In this document: positions 11,250-49,290 of the stretch, in pieces
Numbering within the stretch: position 1 is the first letter of the stretch
Layout: each line of letters opens with the position of its first letter
Virus record (IMG/VR): IMGVR_UViG_3300031576_000001
Location: 258,634 to 322,633 of that record
DNA: 64,000 bases
Direction: 5' to 3' (one strand)
The notes under the pieces: generated by a model
What the model was told of the DNA's origin: nothing
Databases searched by the model: none
Seen by the model: only the letters and a program-made list of their open reading frames with translations
Program-made: the position numbers and the translations under genes

Positions 11250-11268
11250 CCCCTCTGAGGGAAGAGTC

Positions 11269-11317
11269 TGAAGGCTCGTTGCCCCCCTGAGAGGGGGTGA
11301 CGGGCTTTCATTCGTTT
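11269..11317 (+). terminator. intrinsic terminator-like hairpin
   Basis: TGAAGGCTCGTTGCCCCCCT/AGGGGGTGACGGGCTTTCA stem with G-U pairs, followed by TTCGTTT. Confidence 0.65.
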
Positions 11318-11349
11318 AAGGGCGTTGTTATCCCCGACGATAGGGGAGG

Positions 11350-11982
11350 ATGCCCGAGGTAGAGAGACACTCCAGGTGGGAACAGTACCCCAGGAAAGCG
11401 GATCTTATCCGTGACCTACGTACTTTCTTCAACCACCTGGAGGACTCGGTAGATCCCGCTCAGGACGCAAACGCCCTCCTGGCGATAGAATACGACACAC
11501 TACCCAACGCCACGTTGAAGAGCGTGGCGGGTCTGGGGCTCTACACGTTTGACAGCACGTCGGTAGCGGTACCTGACGGCTTGAACGTACTTGACACGGG
11601 GCTACCCACGGGACGTTGGGTCAAGGTAACCACCGGGGGTGGTCCGGCGTCTAGCTACACGCTGACGAGCCATGCCTTCTCGTTTGCCTCTGTACCCTTG
11701 GCTATCATGCTGCCGTTGCCCATGGGCACCCGAGTAGACGGAGTTACCGTAGAGGTCTCCACCGCCTTTGACGGCGTGGGCGCTAGCCTCTTGGTAGGTA
11801 CGCCCACGCTCCCGTCGCTCTACTTTGGAGTGGGCGCAAGTAAACTGAGCGTGGGTGGTGCTTTCTACCACAACGATAAGGTTTATACCGCCCCCCTCTC
11901 TGAGGCTCTCATCCTGACCCTGGCTACAGCGGGCTCCACCGCAGGTACAGGCGCGGTACACGTTCGCACACAAGGCCCGTGA
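11350..11982 (+). CDS. putative virion structural protein
   Basis: G/T/S-rich; C-terminal domain similar to that of 11992-12831; first gene of an operon. Confidence 0.65.
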   Translation: MPEVERHSRWEQYPRKADLIRDLRTFFNHLEDSVDPAQDANALLAIEYDTLPNATLKSVAGLGLYTFDSTSVAVPDGLNVLDTGLPTGRWVKVTTGGGPASSYTLTSHAFSFASVPLAIMLPLPMGTRVDGVTVEVSTAFDGVGASLLVGTPTLPSLYFGVGASKLSVGGAFYHNDKVYTAPLSEALILTLATAGSTAGTGAVHVRTQGP

Positions 11983-11991
11983 AAGAAAACA

Positions 11992-12831
11992 ATGGCTAGT
12001 TACGAAAACCTAGCAGGTACAACCGAGACCACATTTCAAATTGGTCTGGACCGTCCACAAGTAAAGAGTACGTCCACAGGCGAGCTAGAAGCTAGAGACG
12101 CTACAGACTCGACTTACGCCAGGTTTCGCGTAGGCGCCCCTGTAGGTCCAAACGACGCGATTACCCGGTCCTATGCAGACACGCTGAGCAAGCCGATCAT
12201 TGTTTCTGCTCAGTTTGACGGCAACAATGCGCTTCCTGCCAACACCGGAACCCCCAGCTACAAGGTAGTCACAACCACGGGTGCTTTTGCCAGCATTGGG
12301 GACGTGATCTACGATGACGGATCGGGAGTGGGCACTACCACGGTGCTTACGGCAATAGAGGGTCGTGTACTCGCTATTACGGACGCCCTCTCTGGTGGTA
12401 CGGTCAGCCTTGACCCGGACAGCATTTACATCTGGGACGCTGACGGTTCTGCCTATGTAAAGATCGGGGACATTGGCTCCGTAACAGGGGCAAACAGGGT
12501 CATCCGATACACCATTACCAACGCTGCGACGCAGGACAGCGTGACTACGATTCCAGCAAGCGCGATTGTGGGACGCTGTGAGGTGAAGATAACGACCCCC
12601 TATTCCGGGGGAGCGTCTATCTCGGTGGGGCGAGCTGGTTCTCTGGCACTCATTATGCCCCCCACGGGGAACACCCCACAGGGGGCTAGCGGTAACATCT
12701 ACCGTAGGTTCCAAGACACCGACTGGGGTGGCTCAGCTTTGGTGGTGCGGACTACGATCACAGGTGCTCCGGCTGCGGGTGCTGGCGTGATTATTGTCCA
12801 CTACATGACACCCAACGCTTTAGCGTGCTAG
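11992..12831 (+). CDS. putative virion structural/fibre protein
   Basis: N-terminus shared with 12843, C-terminus with 11350; in-frame TTA at 12820. Confidence 0.7.
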   Translation: MASYENLAGTTETTFQIGLDRPQVKSTSTGELEARDATDSTYARFRVGAPVGPNDAITRSYADTLSKPIIVSAQFDGNNALPANTGTPSYKVVTTTGAFASIGDVIYDDGSGVGTTTVLTAIEGRVLAITDALSGGTVSLDPDSIYIWDADGSAYVKIGDIGSVTGANRVIRYTITNAATQDSVTTIPASAIVGRCEVKITTPYSGGASISVGRAGSLALIMPPTGNTPQGASGNIYRRFQDTDWGGSALVVRTTITGAPAAGAGVIIVHYMTPNALAC

Positions 12832-12842
12832 TGTGACCCCCC

Positions 12843-13292
12843 GTGGCTGATTTTGATAACCTCTCCGGCACCAGCGAGTCCAGCTTTCAAGTAGGGCTAG
12901 ACGGACCTCTTTTGAAGAGGAACGGCACTGCTTTGGAGGTTAGGGATGCTGCGGACACCGTGTTTGCAACGTTTCGAGTTGCTGACGGCTCAGGGGCGAG
13001 TGACGCTTTGTCACGGGGGGCACACGAAGCGTTGGACTCCCTGGTTCATGAGCTAGCAGAAACGAGCTACGAAGAGGTGACTCGACTAGGAGGGCTGGTT
13101 ACTGACGTGATTGTGTGGACGGACTCTGGAAAAACCATCAAGGTACGAGAAATGAACCTCACTCGTGCTAGCGGTAGGGTCTCGGTCATTGTCAGAAAGC
13201 AATACAATGCAGGCGTGCTGGTACAAACGATGACTTCAACGATAACCCGGTCGGGCGGTCATGTCGCTTCGATTGACCATGTGGAGACCTGA
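12843..13292 (+). CDS. putative virion structural protein
   Basis: NLSGTSESSFQVGLD N-terminus paralogous to 11992. Confidence 0.7.
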   Translation: MADFDNLSGTSESSFQVGLDGPLLKRNGTALEVRDAADTVFATFRVADGSGASDALSRGAHEALDSLVHELAETSYEEVTRLGGLVTDVIVWTDSGKTIKVREMNLTRASGRVSVIVRKQYNAGVLVQTMTSTITRSGGHVASIDHVET

Positions 13293-13297
13293 AGACA

Positions 13298-14386
13298 ATG
13301 AGTGAGTTTGTAGTTGTCGAGGGTGAGCTAGTACCGATTGACACAGCGGGGAACCCTTTGCCTATTGCCAACGGAGGCACGATAGGCTCAACCCCCGGGC
13401 TCATGGTAGCTGGCAAAGAGGGGACAGCGGCCAGGTTCCTTGAAATGTCTACGGTGTCGGGCGCCAAGGCGCTCAAGGTAGACGTTGTGCAGTCGGTAGC
13501 AGTGGATGTTGGAATCGACGACTGGCTAGGCAGCACCGCGCCCACCGTAGGCCAGAAGACCATGGCAGATTCTTTGCCGGTCACGTTGGCTTCTAACCAA
13601 CCTGCCATTCTCATCACAGGTACAATAACCGCCCTCCCCCCTTCGTCGTCAGCCGCACTGGCTACCATTGCTGTGGGCACCGTGGGTACTTCTGGCAGTG
13701 CGCCCGCTTCAACAGTAACAACAGGCACCCTGGTCTACAAAACAGATTACGTGGAGCCTACCTCAGCAGCGCAAAGGTCGATAAGATCTGACAATGCTGC
13801 CGACACTTCGGCGGGCACAGGGGCGCGCACCGTGAGGGTTACCTACTACGACAACACTACGGCGGGACCATTTACAGAAACGGTGACTCTGGCAGGCACC
13901 ACTTGGGTGAACACTGTAGCCACAAACATTCGCTACGTGGAAAAGATAGAGGTTTTGACCACGGGCACCGATGGGTGGAATGTAGGTATCATTACCCTGC
14001 GTACTGGTACGGGTGGGGGTGGTACAGACATTGGAACAATTGCCGCGAATGATAATCAAACCTTCTGGTGCCACCACTACGTGCCCACGGGGATGACGTG
14101 CTTTGTCACGTCCGCCACGGTGGGTAACAATGCCACGTCAGCTACCAATGGTGGGTTCTTCTTCATCAAGTCGCGCATTCTACCCCCCACCGCGACACTG
14201 GTGACCAAAGGTGTTGTCGCCAGTGACATCATTCGCGCCTACGGTCAGACCAGTACAATTCAGCGTGTTTATGACAGCTCTATCCGGGTCACGGGGCCTG
14301 CTCAGCTAGTCATGCACGTTGTCCACGAAGCCGCCTCCGCGGTACAGCACAGAGCCAGCTTTGACTTTTACGAGGAGGCATCATGA
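13298..14386 (+). CDS. putative virion structural protein
   Basis: DTSAGTGARTVRVTYYD...TETVTLAGTT domain, paralogous to 14383; ATGA coupling to the next gene. Confidence 0.75.
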   Translation: MSEFVVVEGELVPIDTAGNPLPIANGGTIGSTPGLMVAGKEGTAARFLEMSTVSGAKALKVDVVQSVAVDVGIDDWLGSTAPTVGQKTMADSLPVTLASNQPAILITGTITALPPSSSAALATIAVGTVGTSGSAPASTVTTGTLVYKTDYVEPTSAAQRSIRSDNAADTSAGTGARTVRVTYYDNTTAGPFTETVTLAGTTWVNTVATNIRYVEKIEVLTTGTDGWNVGIITLRTGTGGGGTDIGTIAANDNQTFWCHHYVPTGMTCFVTSATVGNNATSATNGGFFFIKSRILPPTATLVTKGVVASDIIRAYGQTSTIQRVYDSSIRVTGPAQLVMHVVHEAASAVQHRASFDFYEEAS

Positions 14387-15327
14387 CCATTCAGATTTCC
14401 CCGCAACACACTCAGGTGATTTACGACTGGTCGGGTTTCAAGACCAAGGCAACATCTTTTGGTTTGCGTCTGCGATACCACCAAGAGGTTAGTACGGTCA
14501 CGGTTTACTTCTACGACCCGCCCGAGGTTCATTTGTGTTGCCTGGCTCGTGGTGGTGCGGAGGAGGCTGAGTTTCTGGCGTCTTACTTGCCCCTGATTCA
14601 GGATAGCCCTCTCTCAGAGGCTATCCTGACTGCGGTTGTGTCTGGCGAGCTACCTACAGCGGCTACCGCGCAAGCTGCCGTGCGAAAGACAGCTTACGTT
14701 GAGCGTACCTCAGAGGCGCGTAGATCCATCAAGTCTACCTCAGCTCTAGACACCAATGGTGGTACAGGAGCACGACAGGTTCAGCTCACCTACTATGATG
14801 ATGCAGGTGACGGCCCATTCACGGAGGTTGTTCTCCTCAACGGGCTCACCGCGGTTGACACTACAGCTACAAACATTCGCTACCTGGCAAGAATGGAAGT
14901 CACGTCCGTAGGCTCCACGGGCACCAACCAGGGCACGATAGAGGTATACAATGGCACGGGGGGTGGTGCTACGGGCTCTGGCTTTGGGAGCATTGCTGTG
15001 GGGGATAATCAAACCCTATGGGCACACCATTACGTGGCAGCGAACCGTGTGTGTTACGTCAATACCGTAGCGGTCAACTCCTCTTCCGCTACAGCAGCTA
15101 ACGCCTCAGTCTTTACGCTCAAAGTGAAGACCTTGAACAGTACTTCCCCGGAGGTAGCGTTGGGTGACCGTATCCGCCTCATTGGTGCCACTTCACACTT
15201 GCAACGTGTGTACGGTAAGACACTGAGGATTCGTGGCCCTGCAAGAATACAAGCCTACGTTCAGCCTGAAACAATTTCTGCCGTGACCCAACGTGTGAGC
15301 TTTGATCTCTATGAGGTAGCGCCATGA
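14383..15327 (+). CDS. putative virion structural protein
   Basis: C-terminal domain paralogous to 13298, N-terminal domain to 15324. Confidence 0.75.
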   Translation: MTIQISPQHTQVIYDWSGFKTKATSFGLRLRYHQEVSTVTVYFYDPPEVHLCCLARGGAEEAEFLASYLPLIQDSPLSEAILTAVVSGELPTAATAQAAVRKTAYVERTSEARRSIKSTSALDTNGGTGARQVQLTYYDDAGDGPFTEVVLLNGLTAVDTTATNIRYLARMEVTSVGSTGTNQGTIEVYNGTGGGATGSGFGSIAVGDNQTLWAHHYVAANRVCYVNTVAVNSSSATAANASVFTLKVKTLNSTSPEVALGDRIRLIGATSHLQRVYGKTLRIRGPARIQAYVQPETISAVTQRVSFDLYEVAP

Positions 15328-16730
15328 GCCCCCCTCTCGCAGCACACCTGACACAAATTTACCACACCTGGGACGACTTCAAAGCTAATCTCACCTCTTG
15401 CACGGGGGTACTACGGCGTCACGAAACCAGTATTCTTATCACGGCTTACTTCTATGATACCCCCGAGGTGCATATCTGCCAACTCTGGAAGGGGGACGTG
15501 CCAGATGGGGTGGACGCAGGTGCAAATACGTCAGCCCTAGCGGACTTTGAGGCTAACTTTCGCACACTGGCAGAGCAACGCAGAGCCCTTGACCTCACCG
15601 ACGACCTAGGTCGCAAGGCCGTCGTAGCCGAGCCCAGGACGGGAACCGAGGTCATCTACTCCTCTGGGAATTTCTGCGATCCCTCGACGTGGTTTGGTGG
15701 CAGCGTGCGAGTCACGGAGCAAAGCCTCACGGACAGTGGTAACGGTCTCACCTGGACCTCGCCAGACACACAATGGGTTGACCTTATCTCGGGTCGAGTA
15801 CAGGACGACGACGGGCTTGTTGAGGAGCAACAGTTTACCACGCCAGGAAACCCTCACGGTTATCAGGTCTCCGTATGGGTGGATGACGTTCTCGTCACCA
15901 TGCGCGAGCCGTTTGAAGCCTCGGGGGGGGATTACGAGGTTCTGTGGACGGAAGGACAGGTGCGATTCTTCACGTCGCAAGCTGGCAAGGCTGTAAAAGC
16001 CTCCTACTCCAAGGCGAACGAGAGTACGTTTTACCTACGCCCCCTCCGGGGTAAAGCCTTGAGCATTGAAGCGGCAGAGTCCGACTTCAGCGAGGACTGC
16101 ATCCCCACTGACACCATCATTTACGCAGTGTTTGGTTGGGTAGAAGCCTTTGCCCCTCAGTATGCTTACACTCCTGGTGTGGGTACAGCGTCATTCACTA
16201 ATGGTAATACCGCAGTCACCGGAGCCGGAACCAGCTTTCTCTCAGAGGTTACTCCTGGTAACTACGTGCGCCTAGAGGCTCACGGACCAGAGAACTACAT
16301 GGTTGTAGCCTCTGTGGAAAGCAACACTGCGTTGACGCTGGCAGCGCCCTACACAGGGGCTACAGGCACCGGGAGCATGGCTATCTCTATGCTCCCTACG
16401 GGGGTGTACCCCTACGGGACCAAGATTGAGCTAAAGCGCGGGCAGTACAAGCGGATCACTCAGATATTTAATGAGGCTATCGGGTCGTACCCCCAGGTCA
16501 CGATCCTGGCTTCCACAGCGGCAGACCGCGCTAACCTGAGCGTTGCGGAGTTCCGCCGCACTTGCCGGGGGCTACGTAGCCCTATACAGAGCACTCCGTT
16601 CAGGTACGCCACCACGCGAGACTTGCGGGCGGATATGGGCATGGAGCTAAGGGTCTGGCTAAAGCACCACCGAGCGTTTGACGGTTTCTTCTCCTCCATG
16701 ACGCTCTATTGCACGTCCAGGTCGCTGTGA
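15324..16730 (+). CDS. putative virion structural protein
   Basis: GTASFTNGNTAVTGAGTSF tail-fibre-like segment; ATGA/GTGA coupling. Confidence 0.7.
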   Translation: MSPPLAAHLTQIYHTWDDFKANLTSCTGVLRRHETSILITAYFYDTPEVHICQLWKGDVPDGVDAGANTSALADFEANFRTLAEQRRALDLTDDLGRKAVVAEPRTGTEVIYSSGNFCDPSTWFGGSVRVTEQSLTDSGNGLTWTSPDTQWVDLISGRVQDDDGLVEEQQFTTPGNPHGYQVSVWVDDVLVTMREPFEASGGDYEVLWTEGQVRFFTSQAGKAVKASYSKANESTFYLRPLRGKALSIEAAESDFSEDCIPTDTIIYAVFGWVEAFAPQYAYTPGVGTASFTNGNTAVTGAGTSFLSEVTPGNYVRLEAHGPENYMVVASVESNTALTLAAPYTGATGTGSMAISMLPTGVYPYGTKIELKRGQYKRITQIFNEAIGSYPQVTILASTAADRANLSVAEFRRTCRGLRSPIQSTPFRYATTRDLRADMGMELRVWLKHHRAFDGFFSSMTLYCTSRSL

Positions 16731-17629
16731 AGGCTCTGGTTCTCTCCGGTGGTGGTAGTAAAGGCTCCTGGCAAGCGGGCGTATTGACTCGTCTCCTTGG
16801 CGAAGAGGGTCAGTACTACGAGGTAATCTGTGGTGTCAGCGTGGGAGCCCTCAACGGGGCCTTCCTGGCTCAGTACCCTCTGGGTAGAGAACGTGAGGCC
16901 AGCTTCGATCTTGGTAATCTCTGGCGTGCTGTAGAAACAAGCAAAATATACAAGCGCTGGTTCCCCTTTGGGCGACTACACGCCCTCTGGCGCGGTTCTG
17001 CTTACAACAGTGAACCCTTGGCGGATTGGGTGTCCACTGCACTCGACACCAAGAGAATCCAAACGTCCGGGCGTAAGCTCAGGGTGGGTGCAGTTTCCTT
17101 GACAACAGGGGAGTACCGCCTCTTTGGTGAGGACTACCCAGAGCTAACCCAAGCTGTTCTTGCGTCAGCTAGTTTTCCAGCCGCACTTTGCCCTGTATCG
17201 ATGGAGGGTGAGCTTTGGTCCGATGGTGGGATCAAAGAGATTACCCCCCTGCAAGGAGCCATCGCTCTTGGTGCTTCGCACGTTGACGTGGTTTTGTGCT
17301 CCCCCAAGAGTACCACGACCCCCTTCCCTGCGGACGCTAACGCAATCAGCGTAGCTATGCGAACGATTGACCTCATGAGCGATGAGATCCTCAACGACGA
17401 CCTAGCTAAGACCGCCATGGTCAATCAGCTTGTCGAGGCGGGGGCGTGCAACGACAAGCGCCTGGTTACCATACGGGTTTTCCGCCCTGAGAAGAACCTG
17501 ATCGAGTCGAGCCTGGACTTCTCTAACGACAAGATGCGTGCCTTGCTTGACCAAGGGTACGCGGCAGCTTCTCGGTGGGAGAGCCTGTTAGCCCCGAGGT
17601 TAGTCCCCCTCTTAGGTGAGCCTGGCTAA
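16727..17629 (+). CDS. patatin-like phospholipase
   Basis: GGGSKG, GVSVG (GxSxG), ASASFP and DGG motifs; first in-frame TTA at 17588. Confidence 0.92.
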   Translation: MKALVLSGGGSKGSWQAGVLTRLLGEEGQYYEVICGVSVGALNGAFLAQYPLGREREASFDLGNLWRAVETSKIYKRWFPFGRLHALWRGSAYNSEPLADWVSTALDTKRIQTSGRKLRVGAVSLTTGEYRLFGEDYPELTQAVLASASFPAALCPVSMEGELWSDGGIKEITPLQGAIALGASHVDVVLCSPKSTTTPFPADANAISVAMRTIDLMSDEILNDDLAKTAMVNQLVEAGACNDKRLVTIRVFRPEKNLIESSLDFSNDKMRALLDQGYAAASRWESLLAPRLVPLLGEPG

Positions 17630-18487
17630 GAGGTCGTGCTTTAGCCACGCCTGGGGGTTGTCATCGCGTCTACGCCAGAGGCAGCTAGCCCGCTGGGTGG
17701 GGTTGACTGCACCCAAAGCCCCCTCTGCGCAACTCCACCAAGAGGTAAGGCTGACGCCCTCCTCGGCGTGAAGGAGATACCCCGTGATGCGCCACCCCGA
17801 GGCGGTACGGTAGCTGTAGGTCTCGGGGTACTTCCCACGCAGGACCATGGGTAGCCCGTCCAGGTTCTTGCCCCTGTCCAAGAGCCATTCTCCCTTGCCG
17901 GCGATGTTGACCCTGCTGCCCAAGAAGTGCCTGGACTTCTCCTGACCTCGGGGACCGTCAAAGAACATCCCGTCCAGCGCTACGAGGTACGTACCCATAG
18001 GCACCCCGTAGCGCTGGCTCTGCCCGTCGTAGACGTGAACCACCGGACAGGGTACCGGCCAGGGTGCCCGTGGACTCGTTTCCAGCTTGCCCCCCAAGTA
18101 GTCCCCCAGGTAGTCCTCCAAGAGGCTGTGCTTGTCGAAGAACCCCTCTTCTTCGAGCTTGTCCAGCTTGTGCAACACTTCCTCTTGCTCGGGGCTAAGC
18201 AAGCTGTCGCTGGTGTGCGCCAGAGCTTCTGAGATGGGCACGGGCACCTTGACAGGGGAGGGCTCCGAAGGCTTGGGTTTGCGAGGCGCTGGGTCGAGAA
18301 GAGGTGCCGCGCCGCACAGAACCTCCATGACCAGGGCACGGGTCATCTTCCCACGGATCACGCGCCCAGCTTTGATGTCATCCTCCACCCGGGCGATAAG
18401 CGCCAGCTTCGTCTCGGGCGTCGTGAGGTCGCGAACGTGTTCAAGGAGCAGCCGGTAAGCCCCGCTGCGTGAGTCGAGCGTTGTCAT
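17612..18487 (-). CDS. hypothetical protein
   Basis: GGTGTA motif at 18501; in-frame TTA at 17627. Confidence 0.7.
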   Translation of the reverse strand: MTTLDSRSGAYRLLLEHVRDLTTPETKLALIARVEDDIKAGRVIRGKMTRALVMEVLCGAAPLLDPAPRKPKPSEPSPVKVPVPISEALAHTSDSLLSPEQEEVLHKLDKLEEEGFFDKHSLLEDYLGDYLGGKLETSPRAPWPVPCPVVHVYDGQSQRYGVPMGTYLVALDGMFFDGPRGQEKSRHFLGSRVNIAGKGEWLLDRGKNLDGLPMVLRGKYPETYSYRTASGWRITGYLLHAEEGVSLTSWWSCAEGALGAVNPTQRASCLWRRRDDNPQAWLKHDLLARLT

Positions 18488-18527
18488 GTCCCCTCTAAGC
18501 TACACCCCAGAGAGGTTCCGGGTAGGC

Positions 18528-18821
18528 TCAGGGTATGTCCGCCCCGTGGCACCTACAGAAGCCTACACGGCAGACTGAGGGCGCACGTTTGCACCGTGGG
18601 CAGAAATCGTCGCCCCAGAAGGACACGGTAACAAACCACCCCGCGTCCCGAGCCTCTTGGCACGCTAGTCGCCGGGCTTCTACCTCTGCCAGGCTTTCTG
18701 CACCTTGCTCCGTGGCAAATCCGGTGAGGGTCTCCTTGCACCCTCTACAGGTCAGGGTGGTTTTTGCGACCCAGTAACCGAGTCGCGTAGGGGAGCGCGT
18801 TGTCTGCGTGCAGCGTGCCAT
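18528..18821 (-). CDS. small Cys-rich (zinc-binding) protein
   Basis: CRGC, CPRC and CRVGFCRC. Confidence 0.5.
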   Translation of the reverse strand: MARCTQTTRSPTRLGYWVAKTTLTCRGCKETLTGFATEQGAESLAEVEARRLACQEARDAGWFVTVSFWGDDFCPRCKRAPSVCRVGFCRCHGADIP

Positions 18822-18893
18822 GTTAAAGGAGAGACTACCCCGGAGAGGCTAATTGAGGGGCTCAAAGTTGAGGCATGGTGTAAACTAGGGGTC

Positions 18894-19742
18894 ATGTGCA
18901 TCACAGCCAACGCAGCCAACCTCTCTGAGACTCGGATTTACGCCGGGGAAGCACGCGACCCCGTAGGGGAGGTGGTTCACGTCCTGGGCTACCAGAACAC
19001 AGCGGAGAACCTGGATACCAGCGGGGGCAACATGATGATCCTCCCCCTACCTGCGGCACGAGAGGTACGCCCGGACGATGTGCGCGTAGCCACGGGTCTT
19101 GACGCAACGGTGCTCGAAGCCATGGCGCTGAGAGTCGAGCGCGTTACACGGAGCCTTGGGACGAAGGACTATAACAGCCTCGACTACGTTTTCGACGTGG
19201 GCTCCTACACAGTGGTCCTCTCTCCTACCCCAGAGGGGGTCAAGGCTGCCATGACTAAGGTGCCCCTACCGCGCCAGCCCAAGAGGCTGGGTTTCGACGT
19301 GGCGTCGTTTTACAGCAAGCACTACAGGGGGCACACCCTGGCACTGTGCTTTTGGGACAGGGCTATCGCAGCGGAGCCCATTTTCTTCACGTACCACCCC
19401 ACTACGCCCACCCTCCTCTTCGCCCCGTGTCTCGACGCTCACGGGGAGGCGCCCCGTCCTGGCAAGGTCAAGACGGACCACACTTTGCTTTGGGGTACAA
19501 CGCTGAGGAAGCTGCAACCTAAGAAGTGGGTACAGCCCGCGCCCATCGTGTTCGACCCCGTGCTCCGGGGACTCATCGGTCAGTACGTGGGGGCGCCGTT
19601 GCCCGCTGTCTTGCAGAACGGGGACTGCTTTTTTTCTGTGTCGGAGTTTGACGCGATGAGCCGGCCAAGCCGGTTCAACATACCGTGTCACCAGCGTAAA
19701 GCGCCGTGGGACCAAACGTACACGGAGATCGGGTTCTTTTAG
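18894..19742 (+). CDS. conserved hypothetical protein
   Basis: MCI...HVLGYQNTAENL...NMMILPLP and FDVGSYTVV recall an uncharacterised family; GGTGTAAACT 7 nt upstream. Confidence 0.7.
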   Translation: MCITANAANLSETRIYAGEARDPVGEVVHVLGYQNTAENLDTSGGNMMILPLPAAREVRPDDVRVATGLDATVLEAMALRVERVTRSLGTKDYNSLDYVFDVGSYTVVLSPTPEGVKAAMTKVPLPRQPKRLGFDVASFYSKHYRGHTLALCFWDRAIAAEPIFFTYHPTTPTLLFAPCLDAHGEAPRPGKVKTDHTLLWGTTLRKLQPKKWVQPAPIVFDPVLRGLIGQYVGAPLPAVLQNGDCFFSVSEFDAMSRPSRFNIPCHQRKAPWDQTYTEIGFF

Positions 19743-26428: not shown

Positions 26429-26657
26429 TAGCTTGCCCGACGTGGGGTAGTCTTTACCCTCACGATGACCGACAAGCAAAAGGGTATCCTGAGAGGCGTA
26501 GCGTGGGGCGTGCTGTGCTGGGGGGTTGTCTTCCTGGCAATGTACCTAGCCAGGCAACACGGACCTGTTCGCGAACACATTCAACCGTTGCCTCCCGTGG
26601 AGTACCAGCCCTCACCTTAGCCTTGACTTGTCCCTGAGCTGAGGTGAGGTACCTGTG

Positions 26658-27164
26658 ATGGACGACCTGACGCTGCCCGACTGGATTCAGAGGCGTATCA
26701 ACGAGATTCTCAGCGTTGGAGGTGTGCTCCCGCTCATGCCTTTTCAGCCCGAAGTCACGGTGGGCGTAGGGAAGAAGATGGGTCATGTGTGTCTGACCGC
26801 CAAGGTCACCATTGACGGCAAGCCAGGAGAGGGTGCGTGGGAGGGTCCAGCTAGCAAGCTGGCAGGTAGTGAGATCGCTGAGGTTGTGCGTGGCATCCTT
26901 GAAACCTCAATCCGCCAGAGCTTTGCACCACCCAAGAAGCTCATCTTGACCAATCTGTTCACTGTACCGCCCCAGGTAGATGACGAGGTTTCCGACTGGC
27001 GTAGTTACGTCACGGACGCCTGGAAAGTCACACTGGGCGACGTGATCGACCTGACGCGCCCCATCAACCTGTCTGACCTTCAACTGATGTTAGAACGGCA
27101 AACCTCGCCCTTCAGGGCGGGGATGGTTTATGTTAGCGCGTGGAGCCTCGTCGGGGTACACTGA
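26658..27164 (+). CDS. hypothetical protein
   Basis: GAGG SD; in-frame TTA at 27090. Confidence 0.65.
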   Translation: MDDLTLPDWIQRRINEILSVGGVLPLMPFQPEVTVGVGKKMGHVCLTAKVTIDGKPGEGAWEGPASKLAGSEIAEVVRGILETSIRQSFAPPKKLILTNLFTVPPQVDDEVSDWRSYVTDAWKVTLGDVIDLTRPINLSDLQLMLERQTSPFRAGMVYVSAWSLVGVH

Positions 27165-27792: not shown

Positions 27793-28052
27793 AAGACGCT
27801 GCGCTAGCTTTTCGTGAGGCTGCGCTAGCCTCCCTCCCACCGTGCCCCCTCTCAGCCAAGGACTCCTGTGGTCCTGTCACGCACTCCGTAGCGGAGGGCT
27901 ACGGGGTTACCCTTTACTGTAGAGCGTGCGTTGCAACGCACGAGATAAAGGGCGCTGTAGAGCTACCGTGGGTTCAAGCTGAGTGCGACTTGCAGAGGGC
28001 GCTAACGAAGCAGACCGGTCTCGCCTCTTGGTTGAGGGACGCAGACGAATAA
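27777..28052 (+). CDS. small Cys-containing hypothetical protein
   Basis: Its TAA stop (28050) pairs with the convergent gene's TTA. Confidence 0.55.
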   Translation: MPLSLKDAALAFREAALASLPPCPLSAKDSCGPVTHSVAEGYGVTLYCRACVATHEIKGAVELPWVQAECDLQRALTKQTGLASWLRDADE

Positions 28053-28853
28053 GAAATCAGCGTCATGGTTCTCTTCAGTGACCACGTTCACGTCTTTGTG
28101 CCCTTTGATGTCCCGGTCGAGGATACCATCGCAATAGCGGCGCACATCTTCGTAATGGTAGACAGCCATACGCCAACGCATAGCGTCAAGCACACCAGCG
28201 CCGTCGTTGGGGTTGTAGGTGTCCTTGAAGAGCACCCGGAACCGGAAGAGGGTGTGAGCGGGTCTCAGCACGTCAATAAGCTGGCGCAATGCTGCGTCAA
28301 GGTTGAAGAAGTCCGGCGGAAAGCTGTTGTCGTCCAGGGTGATCGTAAAACCCCACTGGTCTGAAATGTCCAGACCGGACGCCCCCCCTCTTAGCAGCAA
28401 GAAGTTCTCGGCTATGGTTACCGTCTCTGCAAAGAGAAGCTGGCTAGCCGATAGCATGGTGGACGGTATGCTGCCCGAGAAGTAAAGCCGGAGGACAGAC
28501 AGGAAAAACCTGCGAAACTCCTCTGAGTCAAAGCCCACCTTGGGCAACTTACCGTTGAGAAAGAGCAAGTAGCCGATTACCTGATAGAGAAACTCTGGGC
28601 GTGCAGTAAGTGCTGAGCGGTCCCTGTCCACGTCCTCCAGGGCTAGCTCTAGCCTGGCTATCTCGGTGGCGATGGCCTTCAAATCCAGCGTATAATTGCT
28701 CCCCTCCACCGATGAAATGTACGACGATGGAAGCAGATTCAAGAGCGTAGAAAAGATGGAGCTACCCCGTTGAACAAGACGTAGCTGAAATTCCTTGCCC
28801 TTCTGCGGGACCGAGAAGTTTTGCCTGAGAGGGTCTGTTTCAAATCTGGCCAT
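28002..28853 (-). CDS. putative baseplate wedge protein (tail protein I-like)
   Basis: LLNLLPSSY N-terminus and LIDVLRPAHT motif typical of baseplate wedge subunits; in-frame TTA at 28050. Confidence 0.65.
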   Translation of the reverse strand: MARFETDPLRQNFSVPQKGKEFQLRLVQRGSSIFSTLLNLLPSSYISSVEGSNYTLDLKAIATEIARLELALEDVDRDRSALTARPEFLYQVIGYLLFLNGKLPKVGFDSEEFRRFFLSVLRLYFSGSIPSTMLSASQLLFAETVTIAENFLLLRGGASGLDISDQWGFTITLDDNSFPPDFFNLDAALRQLIDVLRPAHTLFRFRVLFKDTYNPNDGAGVLDAMRWRMAVYHYEDVRRYCDGILDRDIKGHKDVNVVTEENHDADFLFVCVPQPRGETGLLR

Positions 28854-28895
28854 ACTTAGCGTTCCTCGGGGAGTGAAAGGGTGTACTGTAGACTC

Positions 28896-29393
28896 ATGAC
28901 CCCTGACGCTGCCCTTGTCGAAGAGGCACGGACCACGACGGATGAGAAGCGCATCCGTGAGCTAGCCCTGGGATACGCGCTCTGCGTCCTTGCCCTCGCA
29001 GAGAACCCGGCGACGCCCAAAGACCTCTTGGGTGATTTTCTCCAGAATTGGCAGGGCTACTTCCACCAGGGTCACCTAGAGAGGGCGCTAGCCAAGAACC
29101 CCAACCTACCGGAGGACACGCTGTACGCCCTTCTCGTTCTGGGGTGGGTGGACACCCACAACCCCCTCTGGGCACTCTTGTTCTTGCTAGACCCCTCACT
29201 GGCGCGTTTTCACGAAAAGTTGCACTGGGCTCTCGGTACGAAAAGCATGGCAGACGCCCCCGAGGGCTTTGCCTACGCTGTCCTTGCTTCGCTGCCGGCG
29301 GGGCGCGTCCTGCGTATCTTGCGCCCAGCCTACTTGCGCTGGCGCGCTCGCCCTGACCTGGACGTGGCTCGTCGGTTTCCAGCGCTCACCTGA
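28896..29393 (+). CDS. leucine-rich variant (LRV)-like repeat protein
   Basis: LAENPATP and LAKNPNLP repeats; GGTGTACTGT 6 nt upstream. Confidence 0.65.
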   Translation: MTPDAALVEEARTTTDEKRIRELALGYALCVLALAENPATPKDLLGDFLQNWQGYFHQGHLERALAKNPNLPEDTLYALLVLGWVDTHNPLWALLFLLDPSLARFHEKLHWALGTKSMADAPEGFAYAVLASLPAGRVLRILRPAYLRWRARPDLDVARRFPALT

Positions 29394-29613
29394 ACCAGAG
29401 CACGGACGCCAAGAAGAAGCTAGCGAAGACCCACGAGAACAAGACGACGTACATAATGAACGCCAGCGCCAAAAGGTACCTGTTGAACGTATGCCAAGGG
29501 TGACGGCGCCACCAAAGACGAGCCAGTGTGCCTCTCAGTACCCCCCTACAAAGCCTCCCAAGAGGCGTAGGGTGTGCCTTGGTTTGTCTGGGTCCACGGT
29601 AGGCTTCGTGCAT
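29386..29613 (-). CDS. small membrane protein
   Basis: Hydrophobic C-terminal helix. Confidence 0.4.
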   Translation of the reverse strand: MHEAYRGPRQTKAHPTPLGRLCRGVLRGTLARLWWRRHPWHTFNRYLLALAFIMYVVLFSWVFASFFLASVLWFR

Positions 29614-29662
29614 GGTGCTCCTGGTACTGTAGGAAAAGCTCTGCTACCTTGAGTGTAACTGA

Positions 29663-30151
29663 ATGTTCACACCCAATCCTCAACAAGCTGCATTTTTCTC
29701 TGACCCTGACTGTCACGCTAGCCTTCGGTGGTTGCATAACGAAGAGGTGAGTAACCGCGGGACAGGACGCACCACGGCGTTGGCGCACCTCTACTTCCGG
29801 CAAGCCTTTCTCGCTCCCGGCGTCTCGGTCAAGGTCTATGACCACCACGACACAGAGAGGCACCACAAGGGCCTAGCAAGGTTTATCCTTGATTTCGTCA
29901 AGGGTAGAGACTTCGCGGGCTACTGGATAGCCGTTGACCTACACGCGCACACCCTCGCCGCACTAGTGTCCAGCGTGACGAAACCAATGACTGCACCTAG
30001 AGAGGCGACGACTTACATACACACGACTCCAGCGACGTACAGCTCCACAGGTGTAGTTACCGTAGGAGCAACGATAAGCTACGGGGCTACCCACACGTTT
30101 ACAACCATCCCCGTGAGCACTAACTTCGTACCGTTCACAATTACGCATTTA
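29663..30151 (+). CDS. hypothetical protein (ends at TTA; fused to the radical SAM ORF under table 11)
   Basis: RGTGRTT P-loop-like motif; the only in-frame TTA of the 562-aa ORF is at 30149, followed by a GGTGTA motif and a new ATG. Confidence 0.6.
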
Positions 30152-30181
30152 CGCTCGGTGTGGCGGTGTACCCTAGCAGTC

Positions 30182-31351
30182 ATGCGAAGCCTGACCTTGC
30201 AGCATGAGGGTTACACTGTGTACTCCTCTCAGTTTGACGAGAAGACGGGCGCCCTGGTTAGAGCCACGCGCGGTATCCCTCAGTCTTGGAAGCACGAGCG
30301 CGGCAAACTCGACCCCAAGGCTACCGAGGAGCACAAACTCTTCGCGAAGAGGTTCTCTACCCGGTTCTACGGGGGTCCGTGGTCCCCTGTCCCTGAGAGC
30401 GTAGACGTAAAGCTAACCTCGAAATGCAACTTCGGGGGGGAGGACGGGCCATGTGGGGAATACTGCTACATGCAGTCAGAAAAGCGCGGCACACACGCAC
30501 CCAAGGAGCTTATCGAGCAAGTCATCCTCGGCTTTGACCAGCCTCCTTACAGCCTAGCCTACGGAGGAGGTGAGCCAACGCACCATCCTGACTTCCCTTG
30601 GATACTCAGGAGAACCAAAGAGCTTGGCAGTGTGCCTAACTACACGACCAATGGCTCCTACCTCCCCCCTGGCGTGATTGAGGCTACCAATGAGGTTGTG
30701 GGGGGCGTCAGCATGACGTATCACCCCAAGACCGGGCGGGGTTGGTTTGAGAAGCGGTACGACGAGCTAAACAAAGCCCTCTCACCTCGCGTGCAACTCA
30801 ATATCCAGGTCATCGTGGACAAGGACATTGAGCAAACACTATCCGACGTGAAACGTCTTGACCCCTTCGGGACGCGCAAGCTACCGGACAACCGAAGGAG
30901 CCTGGTTCTCCTGGCTTATTACCCCGACGTGGGGCGAGCCAGCCTGGAGAGGCTTATCTTGCGGCAAACGTACCAGCGCCGGCTGCCAGCCATTCTCCAA
31001 GACCTGAGAGGTAACGGGTGGCGCGTAGCCTTCTCCGAGGGTCTCTTGCCTTACTTCCTCTCCCGCCCTGAGATCGGGGTGGATACCCGCATGGCCAGGC
31101 GAATGGAGGGCTTCTTCACCTGTTACGTGGACGACGCAGGCAGAATGAGCAAATCGTCGTTTGCCCCTCCCCAGGAAGACGCACCCACCGTGTACGATAC
31201 CATGGCACAAGACCTCTGGGATGGTCTGCACGCCTGGGGGACTACGCCTGACGGGGAGGCTTGCGAGTCGTGCCCTCACCAGAACCGATGCAGCACGCCC
31301 ACCACGTATAACTACAGCCTTTGTAGTTATGCCCCCCACAATCGGACCTGA
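30182..31351 (+). CDS. radical SAM protein with a C-terminal SPASM-like Cys cluster
   Basis: PESVDVKLTSKC-x8-C-x3-C, GGGEPT, NYTTNG, CESCPHQNRC. Confidence 0.88.
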   Translation: MRSLTLQHEGYTVYSSQFDEKTGALVRATRGIPQSWKHERGKLDPKATEEHKLFAKRFSTRFYGGPWSPVPESVDVKLTSKCNFGGEDGPCGEYCYMQSEKRGTHAPKELIEQVILGFDQPPYSLAYGGGEPTHHPDFPWILRRTKELGSVPNYTTNGSYLPPGVIEATNEVVGGVSMTYHPKTGRGWFEKRYDELNKALSPRVQLNIQVIVDKDIEQTLSDVKRLDPFGTRKLPDNRRSLVLLAYYPDVGRASLERLILRQTYQRRLPAILQDLRGNGWRVAFSEGLLPYFLSRPEIGVDTRMARRMEGFFTCYVDDAGRMSKSSFAPPQEDAPTVYDTMAQDLWDGLHAWGTTPDGEACESCPHQNRCSTPTTYNYSLCSYAPHNRT

Positions 31352-31357
31352 AGCCAG

Positions 31358-31765
31358 ATGACCCACGCAGAAGAACCCTTTGAACTGAGCGGAAACCTGG
31401 GTTTCATCACCAACTCCTCCTCGGTCATCTTTCACTTCCCTCTGAGCCTCTTGCAGCACCCCGACGTGGTAGCCGTGCTGACTGCCTTTGGCGTCACCGG
31501 GGGCGTGGTAGGTGACAACCTGTGGTCCAGAGACCACTGCGCCTCCCTCTTGGTCACACCCGAGCAGAAAGCAAAGGCCCTGGACGAGCTTCTCGGCAAC
31601 GAGTACAGCAAGCCCGAGGGCACTGAGGCGCTCCTCAACCAAGAGGGCGTGGTGCTCGTTTACGGGGATGAGTACGACTCTTTGCCCAGACTGCTCTGTA
31701 CTATGATGCGCGACCTTGCCGAGACCCTTGGCGTGCCCCTGATGGAAAGCGTAGGCTTCAACTGA
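31358..31765 (+). CDS. TNSSS-motif protein (radical SAM-associated)
   Basis: GFITNSSSVIF near the N-terminus; starts 6 nt after the radical SAM gene. Confidence 0.7.
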   Translation: MTHAEEPFELSGNLGFITNSSSVIFHFPLSLLQHPDVVAVLTAFGVTGGVVGDNLWSRDHCASLLVTPEQKAKALDELLGNEYSKPEGTEALLNQEGVVLVYGDEYDSLPRLLCTMMRDLAETLGVPLMESVGFN

Positions 31766-31767
31766 CG

Positions 31768-32070
31768 ATGACCACGCCCCCTCTCCTCGACTACGCCCAG
31801 CGCACAATACGGTGGTTGCGGGGTCACCCCTCCCCCAGCCAAGAGATTATCCTACGGGCGCTCTCAGGGGTCACGTCGGTTCAAGTGTCCGCCCTGGTCA
31901 AGCTGGTTGACTCTCAACTCTCCCCCGCTACCGTCCACCGCGAGCTTGACGGTTTGGAGCGCCTGGGGTGGGTCTCCGTTGACCGTAGCGGACTCCGAGC
32001 CGTGCTACGTGAACAAGGGATGCTCACTATAACCCCTCTGGGCAGATCCGCGCTAGCACTGAGAGGGTAG
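31768..32070 (+). CDS. winged-helix DNA-binding protein
   Basis: LSPATVHRELDGLERLGWV...ITPLGR. Confidence 0.65.
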   Translation: MTTPPLLDYAQRTIRWLRGHPSPSQEIILRALSGVTSVQVSALVKLVDSQLSPATVHRELDGLERLGWVSVDRSGLRAVLREQGMLTITPLGRSALALRG

Positions 32071-32087
32071 CGGTGTATGATGGGCTC

Positions 32088-33695
32088 ATGCCATCGTGGT
32101 TTAGCGAGAACACGTCAGACAAGCAGCACTACAATCCAGGGCAAGTTTACTCCAACTTGCAGACCCTCTTTGAGAAGGACTGCCTGCGAAACGGTCGCAC
32201 CTTCTCCGCTTGGGATCTGTCGGGTATACTCAGGGACGGAAGCTCCTTCGCTGCGTGGGAGAAGAAAATAAAGTCCCTGGGTTTTGGCCGAGCTAGCTTT
32301 TACCGCTCGGACTGGGCTGAACTCACACCGGAACCGGAGAGCGAAACCGTGGTCACCGTGGTCTACCTCGGGGACCACGGGGTGGTGCAATACCAGGGTC
32401 CGCTGACCGGCACCCTTCGAGCCGTCAACGTGATCGCTAACGTGAGCGCTACCGTGAGCCAAGACAAGACGCGCGAAGAGATGCTCACGTTTCTCAGGGC
32501 TAACCTGCAAGAGCGACCTTCCAAAGAGACGGGGGCGCCCTTCCTGGCGACGACCGACTCACGCGGGGGGTTGACCTTCGAGCAAAACCTGACCAGCGTG
32601 GGCTCTCCCTGGGTACCCACTAACTACAGCAAAGAGGTTCGGGCAGCTTACAGCGCCATGCTACCTGCCTTCGCCTCTAAGAACCCCTCGGGCAAGCTGG
32701 TCATCCTCAACGGAGCGCCTGGCACTGGCAAGTCCTTCCTGCTTCAGGCATTGCTGTACGACACCCGGGATCGGTTTTGCCATATCATCATGCCGCCCTA
32801 CATGATGCACAACATCACCGGACCCCAAACCATGTCCGCCCTGCTTCAGCACCGGAACGAAAACACGCGCAAGCGTACCGTCTTCTTCCTAGAGGACGCC
32901 GAGGACGCTCTCTTGGTACGTCAGGGCGATAACCACAGCGCGGTGAGCAACATCCTCAACCTGAGCGACGGTATGATGGGGAAGATCCTCGACATACGGA
33001 TCGTTGCCACCACCAACCGCAAGAAGGTTGAGCTAGACCCCGCCCTAATCCGTGATGAGCGCCTCTTGGCTCATATCTCCGTGGACCCCCTCTCCCCAGA
33101 GGAAGCCCGGGAAGCCTTTGATCACGTCTACCCAGAGAAGGCGGGTCAGTACACCCCGCACTACCCAACCAGCCTGGCTACCGTCTACAAGACAGCCAAG
33201 TCAATGGGGTGGACAGCACCAGAGCCCGCCGATAAGCCCGCTTCTCGCGGTGTGGTGACCCAGCGCCAGATCGACCGAGACGAGGCTAAGGTCCGGGGAC
33301 AATCCAAGGTAGGCGTTAGGGCACAACCGCGCAAACCCCACCTGGCAAGCGCCCCCAAGTTACCCCAGGCTAGGCGTCTCTTCGACAACGCAGCGGACCA
33401 CGCCCCACTCTATGCACCGGAGAAGGTAAAGGGCGATAACCGCCTCAGTGGGGTAGGAAGGCCAGAGGGTTCCCTCGTCGTCGGTCGCCCACCAGTTTGT
33501 GGTGTCGCTGCGTATGTCCGCCAGGATCTCCTCAAGCGTCTGCGGACTCTCGCTACTTACCCAGTGAAAGATGCCCCCCGTCTCTCGCTCAAACCGTTTG
33601 TGCTCAGCCGGGTCTGCAACGCGCAAGAAGGCGCCAGCAAGGACACGTTGAAATCGGGCACGCACAACGGGCGTCATCGGGTATCCCCTGGGTAG
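32088..33695 (+). CDS. AAA+ ATPase
   Basis: Walker A GAPGTGKS, Walker B FFLEDAE, TTN and LDPALIR; in-frame TTA at 33360 (proposed end 33362). Confidence 0.9.
   Translation: MPSWFSENTSDKQHYNPGQVYSNLQTLFEKDCLRNGRTFSAWDLSGILRDGSSFAAWEKKIKSLGFGRASFYRSDWAELTPEPESETVVTVVYLGDHGVVQYQGPLTGTLRAVNVIANVSATVSQDKTREEMLTFLRANLQERPSKETGAPFLATTDSRGGLTFEQNLTSVGSPWVPTNYSKEVRAAYSAMLPAFASKNPSGKLVILNGAPGTGKSFLLQALLYDTRDRFCHIIMPPYMMHNITGPQTMSALLQHRNENTRKRTVFFLEDAEDALLVRQGDNHSAVSNILNLSDGMMGKILDIRIVATTNRKKVELDPALIRDERLLAHISVDPLSPEEAREAFDHVYPEKAGQYTPHYPTSLATVYKTAKSMGWTAPEPADKPASRGVVTQRQIDRDEAKVRGQSKVGVRAQPRKPHLASAPKLPQARRLFDNAADHAPLYAPEKVKGDNRLSGVGRPEGSLVVGRPPVCGVAAYVRQDLLKRLRTLATYPVKDAPRLSLKPFVLSRVCNAQEGASKDTLKSGTHNGRHRVSPG
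33360..33677 (-). CDS. hypothetical protein
   Basis: ATGA-coupled to 33674-33895; its TAA pairs with the AAA gene's TTA. Confidence 0.65.
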   Translation of the reverse strand: MTPVVRARFQRVLAGAFLRVADPAEHKRFERETGGIFHWVSSESPQTLEEILADIRSDTTNWWATDDEGTLWPSYPTEAVIALYLLRCIEWGVVRCVVEETPSLG

Positions 33696-49030: not shown

Positions 49031-49290
49031 GGTAACAATCTCTCGTGTTTGGGTGCCTGGCGGAAGGGGTACACCGAGAGAGCCACGGGGAGGACCACGC
49101 TTGCGGGGGAGCTAGAAGAAGGCTTTCATGGTGAGCGTAGGGTAACCAGGGTTAGAGGTTGGTACAAGGGGTGCGCCCTGCGGGAGTTGAACCCGCGCAA
49201 AAGAACTTTAGAGGCTCTGTACTCTACCTTTGAGTTAAAGGCGCGTTGTGTGGGCTTCTGCTCGATCTCACGAGGTAGCCCGTTGTGAAG

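Follow-up and report, generated by a model that had tools for sequence, protein, structure and literature searches.

An apparent 562-residue radical SAM fusion in a huge phage comprises two genes separated by a TTA codon that appears to serve as a stop signal

The locus at 29663-31351 (+) of the analysed window is a continuous open reading frame of 562 codons in which a small-protein gene is followed, in the same frame, by a gene for a radical SAM enzyme; directly downstream of this frame lies a conserved partner gene (Table 1). The window is a 64,000-nucleotide stretch (positions 258,634 to 322,633) that forms the end of the 322,633-bp IMG/VR virus record IMGVR_UViG_3300031576_000001, a phage sequence from a cave metagenome that is estimated to be 68% complete, has a GC content of about 59% and carries 39 tRNA genes. 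Here, we report a comparative analysis of this locus, and of the placement of TTA codons across the phage genome and those of its relatives, which indicates that the two genes are separate and that TTA appears to be used as a terminator in this phage and its closest relatives.

Organization of the locus and boundaries of the two genes

An in-frame TGA at 29660 sits directly before the ATG of the 562-codon frame, and the only in-frame TTA is codon 163. It is followed by GGTGTACCCT at 30165-30174, by 7 nt (AGCAGTC) and by an ATG at 30182-30184, which is in frame as codon 174. The single in-frame TTA, the sequence after it and the ATG were confirmed as the preliminary description had stated them. 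An independent assembly of the probable source sample (a Logan contig with a depth of about 12.6) is identical over 29400-31400, with no indels, which rules out an assembly or sequencing error joining two frames. A single TTA in 562 codons is not unusual given the ORF-wide average of 0.98 per 1000 codons, but it is unusual compared with the rate in ORF bodies, 0.19 per 1000 (10 in 51,901 codons).

Table 1. Coordinates within the window of the features of the locus, delimited according to the reading proposed here
Position	Strand	Feature	Properties
29663..30151	+	Small-protein gene	162 codons plus the TTA inferred to act as terminator; member of a family of stand-alone small phage proteins with the motif R-x-TGRTT-x-LA ... 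PG ... V-x-DH-x-DT; also a 4-stop ORF
29663..29977	+	Core domain of the small protein, predicted folded	Residues 1-105; AlphaFold2 pLDDT 81-91 over residues 1-100; codon log-odds 0.209
29978..30148	+	Thr-rich C-terminal tail of the small protein	Residues 106-162; predicted disordered (pLDDT below 50 for residues 106-164); codon log-odds 0.066; absent from all family members
30149..30151	+	TTA, inferred terminator of the small gene	Context TTAC
30152..30181	+	Intergenic spacer	30 nt; in frame and free of canonical stops; codon log-odds -0.198 (codons 164-173)
30165..30170	+	GGTGTA start-associated motif	11 nt upstream of the radical SAM ATG; 10 nt before the orthologous ATG in L014 and L003, 13 nt in L005/L006
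30182..31351	+	Radical SAM gene, SPASM/twitch type	389 aa; stop TGA; small N-terminal beta-rich domain; AlphaFold2 mean pLDDT 85; codon log-odds 0.242
31358..31765	+	Conserved partner gene	135 aa; motif GF[IV]TNSSS; function unknown

The boundaries of homologues had been put forward beforehand as a way to examine the split, and full-length fusion homologues with a sense codon at the TTA position as the finding that would speak against it; no such fusion was found. A search with the whole protein retrieved 225 relatives, mostly of 365-420 aa (about 390 aa), and none of the 120 best-scoring covers the N-terminal 173 residues, or more than the C-terminal ~70% of the query. Radical SAM similarity starts at about residue 243 and whole-family similarity at residue 174. 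In an alignment of 17 relatives, all begin at, or within a few residues of, the MR[ST]M aligned to M174; the long ones are extended at the C-terminus or carry inteins, never extended at the N-terminus. In nine related loci, the aligned start is preceded by an in-frame stop 3-60 codons upstream.

A word-index search with residues 1-173 found nothing, and scans of viral contigs with the single protein or with the alignment of the small-protein family gave nothing usable. An exhaustive phmmer search against 1.8 billion representatives, however, found 11 relatives of 93-154 aa that match residues 1 to ~105, the best being P0121 (100 aa, 47% identity, E 6e-13), in addition to a low-complexity match to a 480-aa protein. 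All meaningful relatives of the N-terminal part are thus stand-alone small proteins, and the related ESM Atlas clusters consist of proteins of 100-138 aa and are 90-97% viral. The gene for P0121 lies on L014, the nearest, syntenic relative, where the small gene ends in TAA, 22 nt follow and the radical SAM ATG comes next. In G001:C1, an independent 205-kb contig of a related phage, the two homologues lie 106 kb apart, and in other phages the small gene has unrelated neighbors. The two parts are therefore ancestrally and usually separate genes, in agreement with the predicted structure of the N-terminal part. No confident fold match was obtained for the small protein (best Z 5.4, with weak winged-helix and P-loop N-terminal resemblances), and no function could be assigned to it.

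The GGTGTA contained in GGTGTACCCT is a genome-wide start-associated motif with a fixed spacing of 10-12 nt. Of the 268 GGTGTA sites in the genome, 58 are followed by the start of an ORF of at least 80 codons, 38 of them at exactly 10-11 nt, whereas GGAGG gives 7% with no preferred spacing. The presence of this motif at the typical distance supports independent initiation at 30182. A canonical Shine-Dalgarno analysis showed no strong consensus in this phage, and a promoter and terminator scan of 28800-31900 gave nothing informative.

The 389-aa protein is predicted to be a SPASM/twitch-type radical SAM enzyme. The best Foldseek matches of the model are the peptide maturases SuiB, CteB, SkfB, PqqE and anSME, together with DesII (E 4e-11 to 1e-7, TM-scores by the model of about 0.5-0.64), consistent with a partial TIM-barrel core plus a C-terminal auxiliary-cluster domain. 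As in these peptide maturases, there is a C-terminal Cys-rich CxxCx5C...C region (invariant Cys at C534, C537, C543 and C554), a small N-terminal domain and a conserved small partner gene. Sequence identity is only 12-17%, sequence-level matches to solved structures are weak, and the substrate and chemistry are unknown. The family consensus at the SAM cluster is CxFGCxYC (CX3CX2C), whereas this protein has CNFGGEDGPCGEYC (CX8CX3C) and its nearest relative P0003 has a longer variant of the same kind; three Cys are present but, with such unusual spacing, we make no call as to whether the canonical cluster-binding motif is represented. The family is essentially confined to huge phages. The 135-aa partner gene lies directly downstream of the radical SAM gene in the related loci L003, L004, L005/6, L008, L010 and L014, and about 1.5 kb downstream in L012, and it is fused to the radical SAM C-terminus in the homologues P0008 and P0082. 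From this we infer that a protein or peptide substrate or partner is likely. Complex formation between the small protein and the enzyme was not modelled, as we do not claim that the two bind.

Placement of TTA codons across the phage and its relatives

To assess the rarity of TTA, we counted this codon across the 322-kb phage and found that it is not placed like a codon. In the 111 longest non-overlapping ORFs, 45 of 63 in-frame TTAs lie in the last tenth of the ORF (binomial P 4e-31). Only 7 lie in 16,650 body codons, where the other two frames hold 135 and 92, and 30 lie in the last 15 codons; the rate of 0.19 per 1000 in ORF bodies contrasts with 6.7 per 1000 off-frame. Among all 61 sense codons, TTA is the only outlier, with 71% of its occurrences in the last tenth against 13% for the next codon. 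An origin of this clustering from AT-rich or hairpin motifs at gene ends was rejected because the rise is strongest in frame (30 against 19 and 19), because the rare codons ATA, CAT and AAT do not show it, and because standard-code relatives analysed in the same way are flat. Some TTAs are the complement of the TAA stop of a convergent gene (for example, 33360-33362), but this holds for a few pairs and cannot explain co-directional junctions such as the present one. The other internal TTAs in long ORFs largely sit where coding pauses and an in-frame start follows, with two exceptions (ORF8 and ORF36) that have no start after them.

The segments between a terminal TTA and the canonical stop look non-coding, with codon log-odds of -0.107 and a flat GC-by-position (GC1/2/3) pattern, compared with 0.230 for equal-length segments before the TTA (Mann-Whitney P 6e-10) and 0.189 for the last 12 codons of ORFs without a terminal TTA. 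The same procedure gave flat TTA distributions, and equal scores before and after TTA, in three more distant relatives, G004, G005 and G002. In contrast, the anomaly was reproduced in G001:C1, with 70% of TTAs in the last tenth and scores of 0.307 before and -0.242 after; the related genome G003 shows a weaker version of the pattern.

An independent test was provided by homology. Orthologues in the standard-code relatives G004 and G002 end within 3 residues of the TTA in about 15 ORFs, several of these points lying 11-97 codons before the canonical stop, and in three more ORFs (q19, q24 and q112) the stop codon of the relative aligns exactly to the TTA of this phage. Only one ORF (q84) fits its canonical stop better than its TTA. 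ORF10, a 1177-codon ORF, corresponds to two ORFs in three relatives, with the boundary at its TTA, and a ThyX ORF ends at a TTA that is followed directly by the GTG of a CxxCxxCC protein. Similarity of region 28002-28853 to its L014 orthologue is about 80% up to a shared TTA and vanishes right after it. Within 33,327 aligned codons, this phage has one TTA, which is opposite a TGA, whereas the relatives have 61.

The phage encodes tRNA-Leu GAG, TAG, CAG and CAA but not UAA, as far as the incomplete record shows, whereas the standard-code relative G004 does carry Leu UAA. When TTA is counted as a stop, 203 ORFs of at least 150 aa end in TGA (80), TTA (66), TAA (32) and TAG (25). The base following a TTA terminator is G in 32 cases, C in 21, T in 13 and A in none, and TTAA is rare genome-wide. 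Frames after TAG look non-coding on average, which does not suggest TAG read-through via the CUA tRNA, a possibility not pursued further.

Interpretation of the split and alternative explanations

The preliminary description interpreted the apparent fusion as two genes split at the TTA, and every test that we could run supports this interpretation. In the reading that we favor (with a probability of roughly 0.85), translation of the small protein starts at ATG 29663 and ends at the TTA, and the radical SAM enzyme starts on its own at ATG 30182; the frame would look continuous only because this phage lineage uses TTA as a terminator alongside TGA, TAA and TAG, while standard gene calling reads it as leucine. 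The gene boundaries and the terminator-like behavior of TTA across the genome are demonstrated by comparison, whereas it is an inference that ribosomes really release the chain at TTA. There is no protein- or RNA-level evidence, and only DNA runs contain this sequence; the use of TTA as a stop in a phage lineage rests on several kinds of comparative evidence and still needs protein-level proof. Some observations do not fit this reading easily: q84 is an exception, the tail before the TTA (codons 106-162) has weak coding signal and no homologues, and this TTA is followed by C, which is less common than G among TTA terminators. The lack of a release-factor-like gene in the phage record and the normal TTA usage and RF2 of a possible host, described below, also count against it.

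The molecular means of termination are unknown. Candidates are a release factor with widened specificity encoded by the phage or the host, as in organelles that use UUA as a stop, or loss or destruction of tRNA-Leu(UAA) followed by rescue of the stalled ribosome. No prfA-like, prfB-like or other release-factor-like gene was found in the incomplete phage record. The related phage contig is binned in a metagenome-assembled genome named Lysinibacter sp., whose bacterial contigs use TTA throughout their ORFs and whose RF2 has a normal SPF motif; if this bacterium is the host, its tRNA-Leu(UAA) should read TTA, but binning is weak evidence of host identity, the true host was not established, and the host tRNAs are unknown. 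Genes shared only by the two TTA-stop phages turned out to be a tail-fibre and patatin block, not translation factors, which hints at a shared host type but identifies no factor.

Among the alternatives, the one that survives best, although we consider it less likely than not by a wide margin, is that TTA is an unassigned "hungry" codon rather than a true stop, so that ribosomes stall and are released by rescue systems (ArfB-like factors or tmRNA) or by slipping +1 onto TAG in TTAG contexts. The gene split would be the same, without recognition by a release factor. The lack of tRNA-Leu(UAA) and of a detectable release factor in the phage, the 32 of 66 TTA terminators in which the following G creates TAG in the +1 frame, and the small GGQ-domain (ArfB-like) ORFs of the related phages G002 and G005 are compatible with this possibility. 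However, stalling would be a costly way to end a third of all genes (66 of 203 ORFs), half of the terminators are TTAC or TTAT, where a +1 slip gives no stop, including TTAC at this site and at the homology-backed ORF10 junction, and the GGQ-domain ORFs were seen only in relatives that use TTA normally. The +1 slip was accordingly rejected as the general mechanism.

The preliminary description further suggested that, if TTA were leaky, the locus would be a conditional fusion, whereby ribosomes reading through when tRNA-Leu(UAA) is available would yield a minor 562-aa protein alongside the two separate products. This is possible because the frames coincide and no canonical stop lies in the spacer, several other TTA junctions are likewise in frame with the next gene, and the candidate host bin uses TTA as a sense codon, so that a decoding tRNA may be present. 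Nothing, however, suggests selection for read-through: the fraction of long open frames after TTA (24%) lies within the range for TGA, TAA and TAG (19-36%), and the separation of the two genes by TAA in L014 and their lack of linkage in G001:C1 imply no conserved need for a fusion. No read-through has been shown, and we regard this scenario as doubtful.

It is improbable that only the radical SAM gene is real and that the upstream 173 codons are a decaying or untranslated remnant that happens to be open. Codons 106-173 do have non-coding-like usage, and there is no canonical Shine-Dalgarno sequence or GGTGTA motif at the usual spacing before ATG 29663, but codons 1-105 have normal coding statistics, a confidently folded model and conserved family motifs, and the orthologous small gene is intact in L014 and G001:C1. 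The least likely option, a true fusion in which TTA is simply a very rare leucine codon and one protein is made with an N-terminal accessory domain, could appeal to the frame being open in two assemblies and to the 9% or so of off-frame 68-codon windows that are open by chance, so that selection for openness is conceivable, but is contradicted by the absence of fusion homologues among those examined, the retained family start and upstream GGTGTA motif, the coincidence of TTA with orthologue stops across the genome, the predicted disorder of the linker and the non-coding score of codons 164-173.

Related genetic codes and implications

UUA serves as a stop codon in labyrinthulean (Thraustochytrium) mitochondria (NCBI table 23). 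It also does so in peDinoflagellate plastids (UUA/UCA) and in Marsupiomonadales and Pseudoscourfieldia mitochondria (UUA/UUG) (PMC12574857). As in the phage, a leucine codon there is absent from ORF bodies and sits where homologues have stops, no cognate tRNA(UAA) gene is present, and earlier annotations produced spurious read-through or fused ORFs (PMC12574857). Those, however, are tiny organelle genomes whose dedicated release factors carry matching mutations (RF2 Ser204 substitution, altered mtRF1a), whereas this is a 322-kb phage that must use the translation system of a bacterial cell; no altered release factor was found, TTG remains a normal Leu codon (15.8 per 1000), and close relatives keep the standard meaning of TTA. 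Large phages such as Lak and crAss-like phages, in which TAG or TGA is read as an amino acid, similarly depart from the standard code, carry many tRNAs of their own, including a suppressor-type tRNA, and are given wrong gene boundaries by standard gene calling. The direction is opposite, however: there a stop becomes a sense codon and genes appear fragmented, whereas here a sense codon becomes a stop and genes appear extended or fused. In Streptomyces, TTA is the rarest codon and depends on a single tRNA-Leu(UAA) encoded by bldA (PMC4932002), a theme that a possible actinobacterial host (the Lysinibacter bin) would fit, but there TTA is decoded as Leu inside the ORFs of regulated genes, whereas in the phage it is missing from conserved ORF interiors and marks ORF ends or gene junctions. 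A merely rare Leu codon or bldA-like control is rejected by the position of TTA and by orthologue ends.

A more far-reaching possibility, which is not excluded but which we consider speculative and rather unlikely, is that a lineage of huge phages, possibly infecting cave actinobacteria, has turned TTA into a stop codon while its host still reads TTA as leucine. This would imply a phage-imposed change to decoding during infection, for example, removal of host tRNA-Leu(UAA) or an unrecognized phage termination factor. Such a change could also stall host mRNAs that contain TTA, and would make in-frame junctions like the present one switchable between two proteins and one fusion, depending on tRNA-Leu(UAA) levels.

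To our knowledge, the use of TTA described here would be the first sense-to-stop codon change in a virus, and the first outside organelles; literature searches found no phage or bacterial report of a change in this direction. Changes of this kind are easy to miss, because standard gene callers run on to the next canonical stop, adding junk tails to about a third of the proteins of this phage and fusing neighboring in-frame genes, as at this locus, ORF10 and the ThyX ORF. The analysis provides a simple screen that could be run over all viral and microbial genomes, asking for each sense codon whether it clusters at ORF ends and whether coding signal drops after it. It also raises the testable question of how UUA terminates translation in a bacterial cell that, if the candidate host is right, decodes it as leucine. 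For this locus, the findings mean that the radical SAM enzyme should be studied as a 389-aa protein together with its conserved 135-aa downstream partner, not as a 562-aa fusion.

Further ORFs with a probable end at TTA and related sequence features

The coordinates of other ORFs of the phage with a TTA of interest, both in the window and elsewhere in the genome, are collected with those of the remaining features in the table below. The AAA+ ATPase ORF, called as 540 aa, probably ends at a TTA, which gives a protein of 429 aa, and the end of its orthologue in the standard-code relative G004 maps near residue 396. The same three bases are the TAA stop of the convergent gene on the other strand: because TTA and TAA are reverse complements, they can act as one two-way stop. 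Two more neighboring ORFs end at a TTA before their canonical stop. In the second of these, the TTA is conserved in L014, the nearest syntenic relative, and the G004 orthologue ends exactly there.

Outside the window, other apparent fusions contain an internal TTA followed within 1-17 codons by an in-frame ATG or GTG. Examples are TTA-CCC-ATG, TTA-GCC-ATG, and a ThyX ORF followed by a CxxCxxCC protein, and one of these ORFs, ORF10, is confirmed as two genes in relatives. Across the whole genome, the tetranucleotide TTAA is strongly under-represented, with 98 sites in 322 kb, against 958 TTAG and 1975 TTAC counted on both strands.

Coordinates of the features described in the text (window, the 64-kb stretch; genome, the whole virus record, with these positions lying outside the window; L014, a related locus)
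Feature	Sequence	Coordinates	Strand	TTA
tRNA, 75 nt, anticodon CTA	window	49170-49244	-	
AAA+ ATPase ORF	window	32073-33695	+	33360-33362
Gene convergent with the AAA+ ATPase ORF	window	33360-33677	-	
First neighboring ORF ending at a TTA	window	26655-27164	+	27090-27092
Second neighboring ORF ending at a TTA	window	28002-28853	-	28050-28052
GGTGTA motif (example)	window	30165-30170		
Radical SAM cluster motif (residues 255-268 of the ORF)	window	30425-30466		
135-aa partner gene	window	31358-31765		
Block of tail-fibre-like genes plus a patatin-like phospholipase	window	8646-19742		
Patatin-like phospholipase	window	16709-17590		
Apparent fusion with internal TTA	genome	62374-65907		
Apparent fusion with internal TTA	genome	170097-177809		
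Apparent fusion with internal TTA	genome	206037-207998		
Apparent fusion with internal TTA	genome	224664-226136		
Apparent fusion with internal TTA	genome	228864-229763		
Apparent fusion with internal TTA	genome	249580-250479		
Radical SAM gene called as three ORFs	L014	5326-7944		

A start-associated motif, a CTA tRNA and genomic associations

The hexamer GGTGTA sits at a sharply fixed distance of 10-12 nt before 48 start codons in the genome, with no conserved flanks, whereas canonical GGAGG shows no such spacing. The motif is conserved at orthologous starts in relatives, and it may be an unusual ribosome-binding signal or a promoter-proximal signal of this phage clade. The phage also carries a tRNA with the anticodon CTA, of the amber-suppressor type, which is labeled ‘Pyl’ by ARAGORN; the relatives G004 (two copies) and G005, another standard-code phage, carry one too. 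Frames after TAG stops look non-coding on average, so TAG seems to be a stop in most genes.

The TTA-stop relative G001:C1 is a 205-kb contig of G001 (GCA_040400085.1, ‘MAG: Lysinibacter sp. isolate EUL_204’), a 5.1-Mb bacterial MAG that contains huge-phage contigs, namely C1, C4, and C5 with split RNA-polymerase-like genes. The bacterial contigs of this MAG use TTA as an ordinary codon, and the presence of the phage contigs reflects either mis-binning or a hint to the host. The block of tail-fibre-like genes plus a patatin-like phospholipase is shared with G001:C1 and absent from the three standard-code relatives.

Variation in the radical SAM family and its partner gene

The radical SAM cluster motif of this phage is CNFGGEDGPCGEYC (CX8CX3C), at the position where the family has CxFGCxYC; the nearest relative, the homologue P0003, has a variant with a similar insertion and the same CX3C ending. 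Several radical SAM homologues of 725-912 aa (P0011, P0033, P0068, P0099, P0105, and P0112) carry intein or LAGLIDADG domains. In L014, the gene carries a HINT/intein-like insert early in the protein and is called as three ORFs around a HINT domain.

The conserved 135-aa partner, which contains the motif GF[IV]TNSSS and to which no family or fold could be assigned, is fused to the C-terminus of the radical SAM enzyme in some phages, as in the homologues P0008 and P0082. This is a real fusion that links the two functionally.
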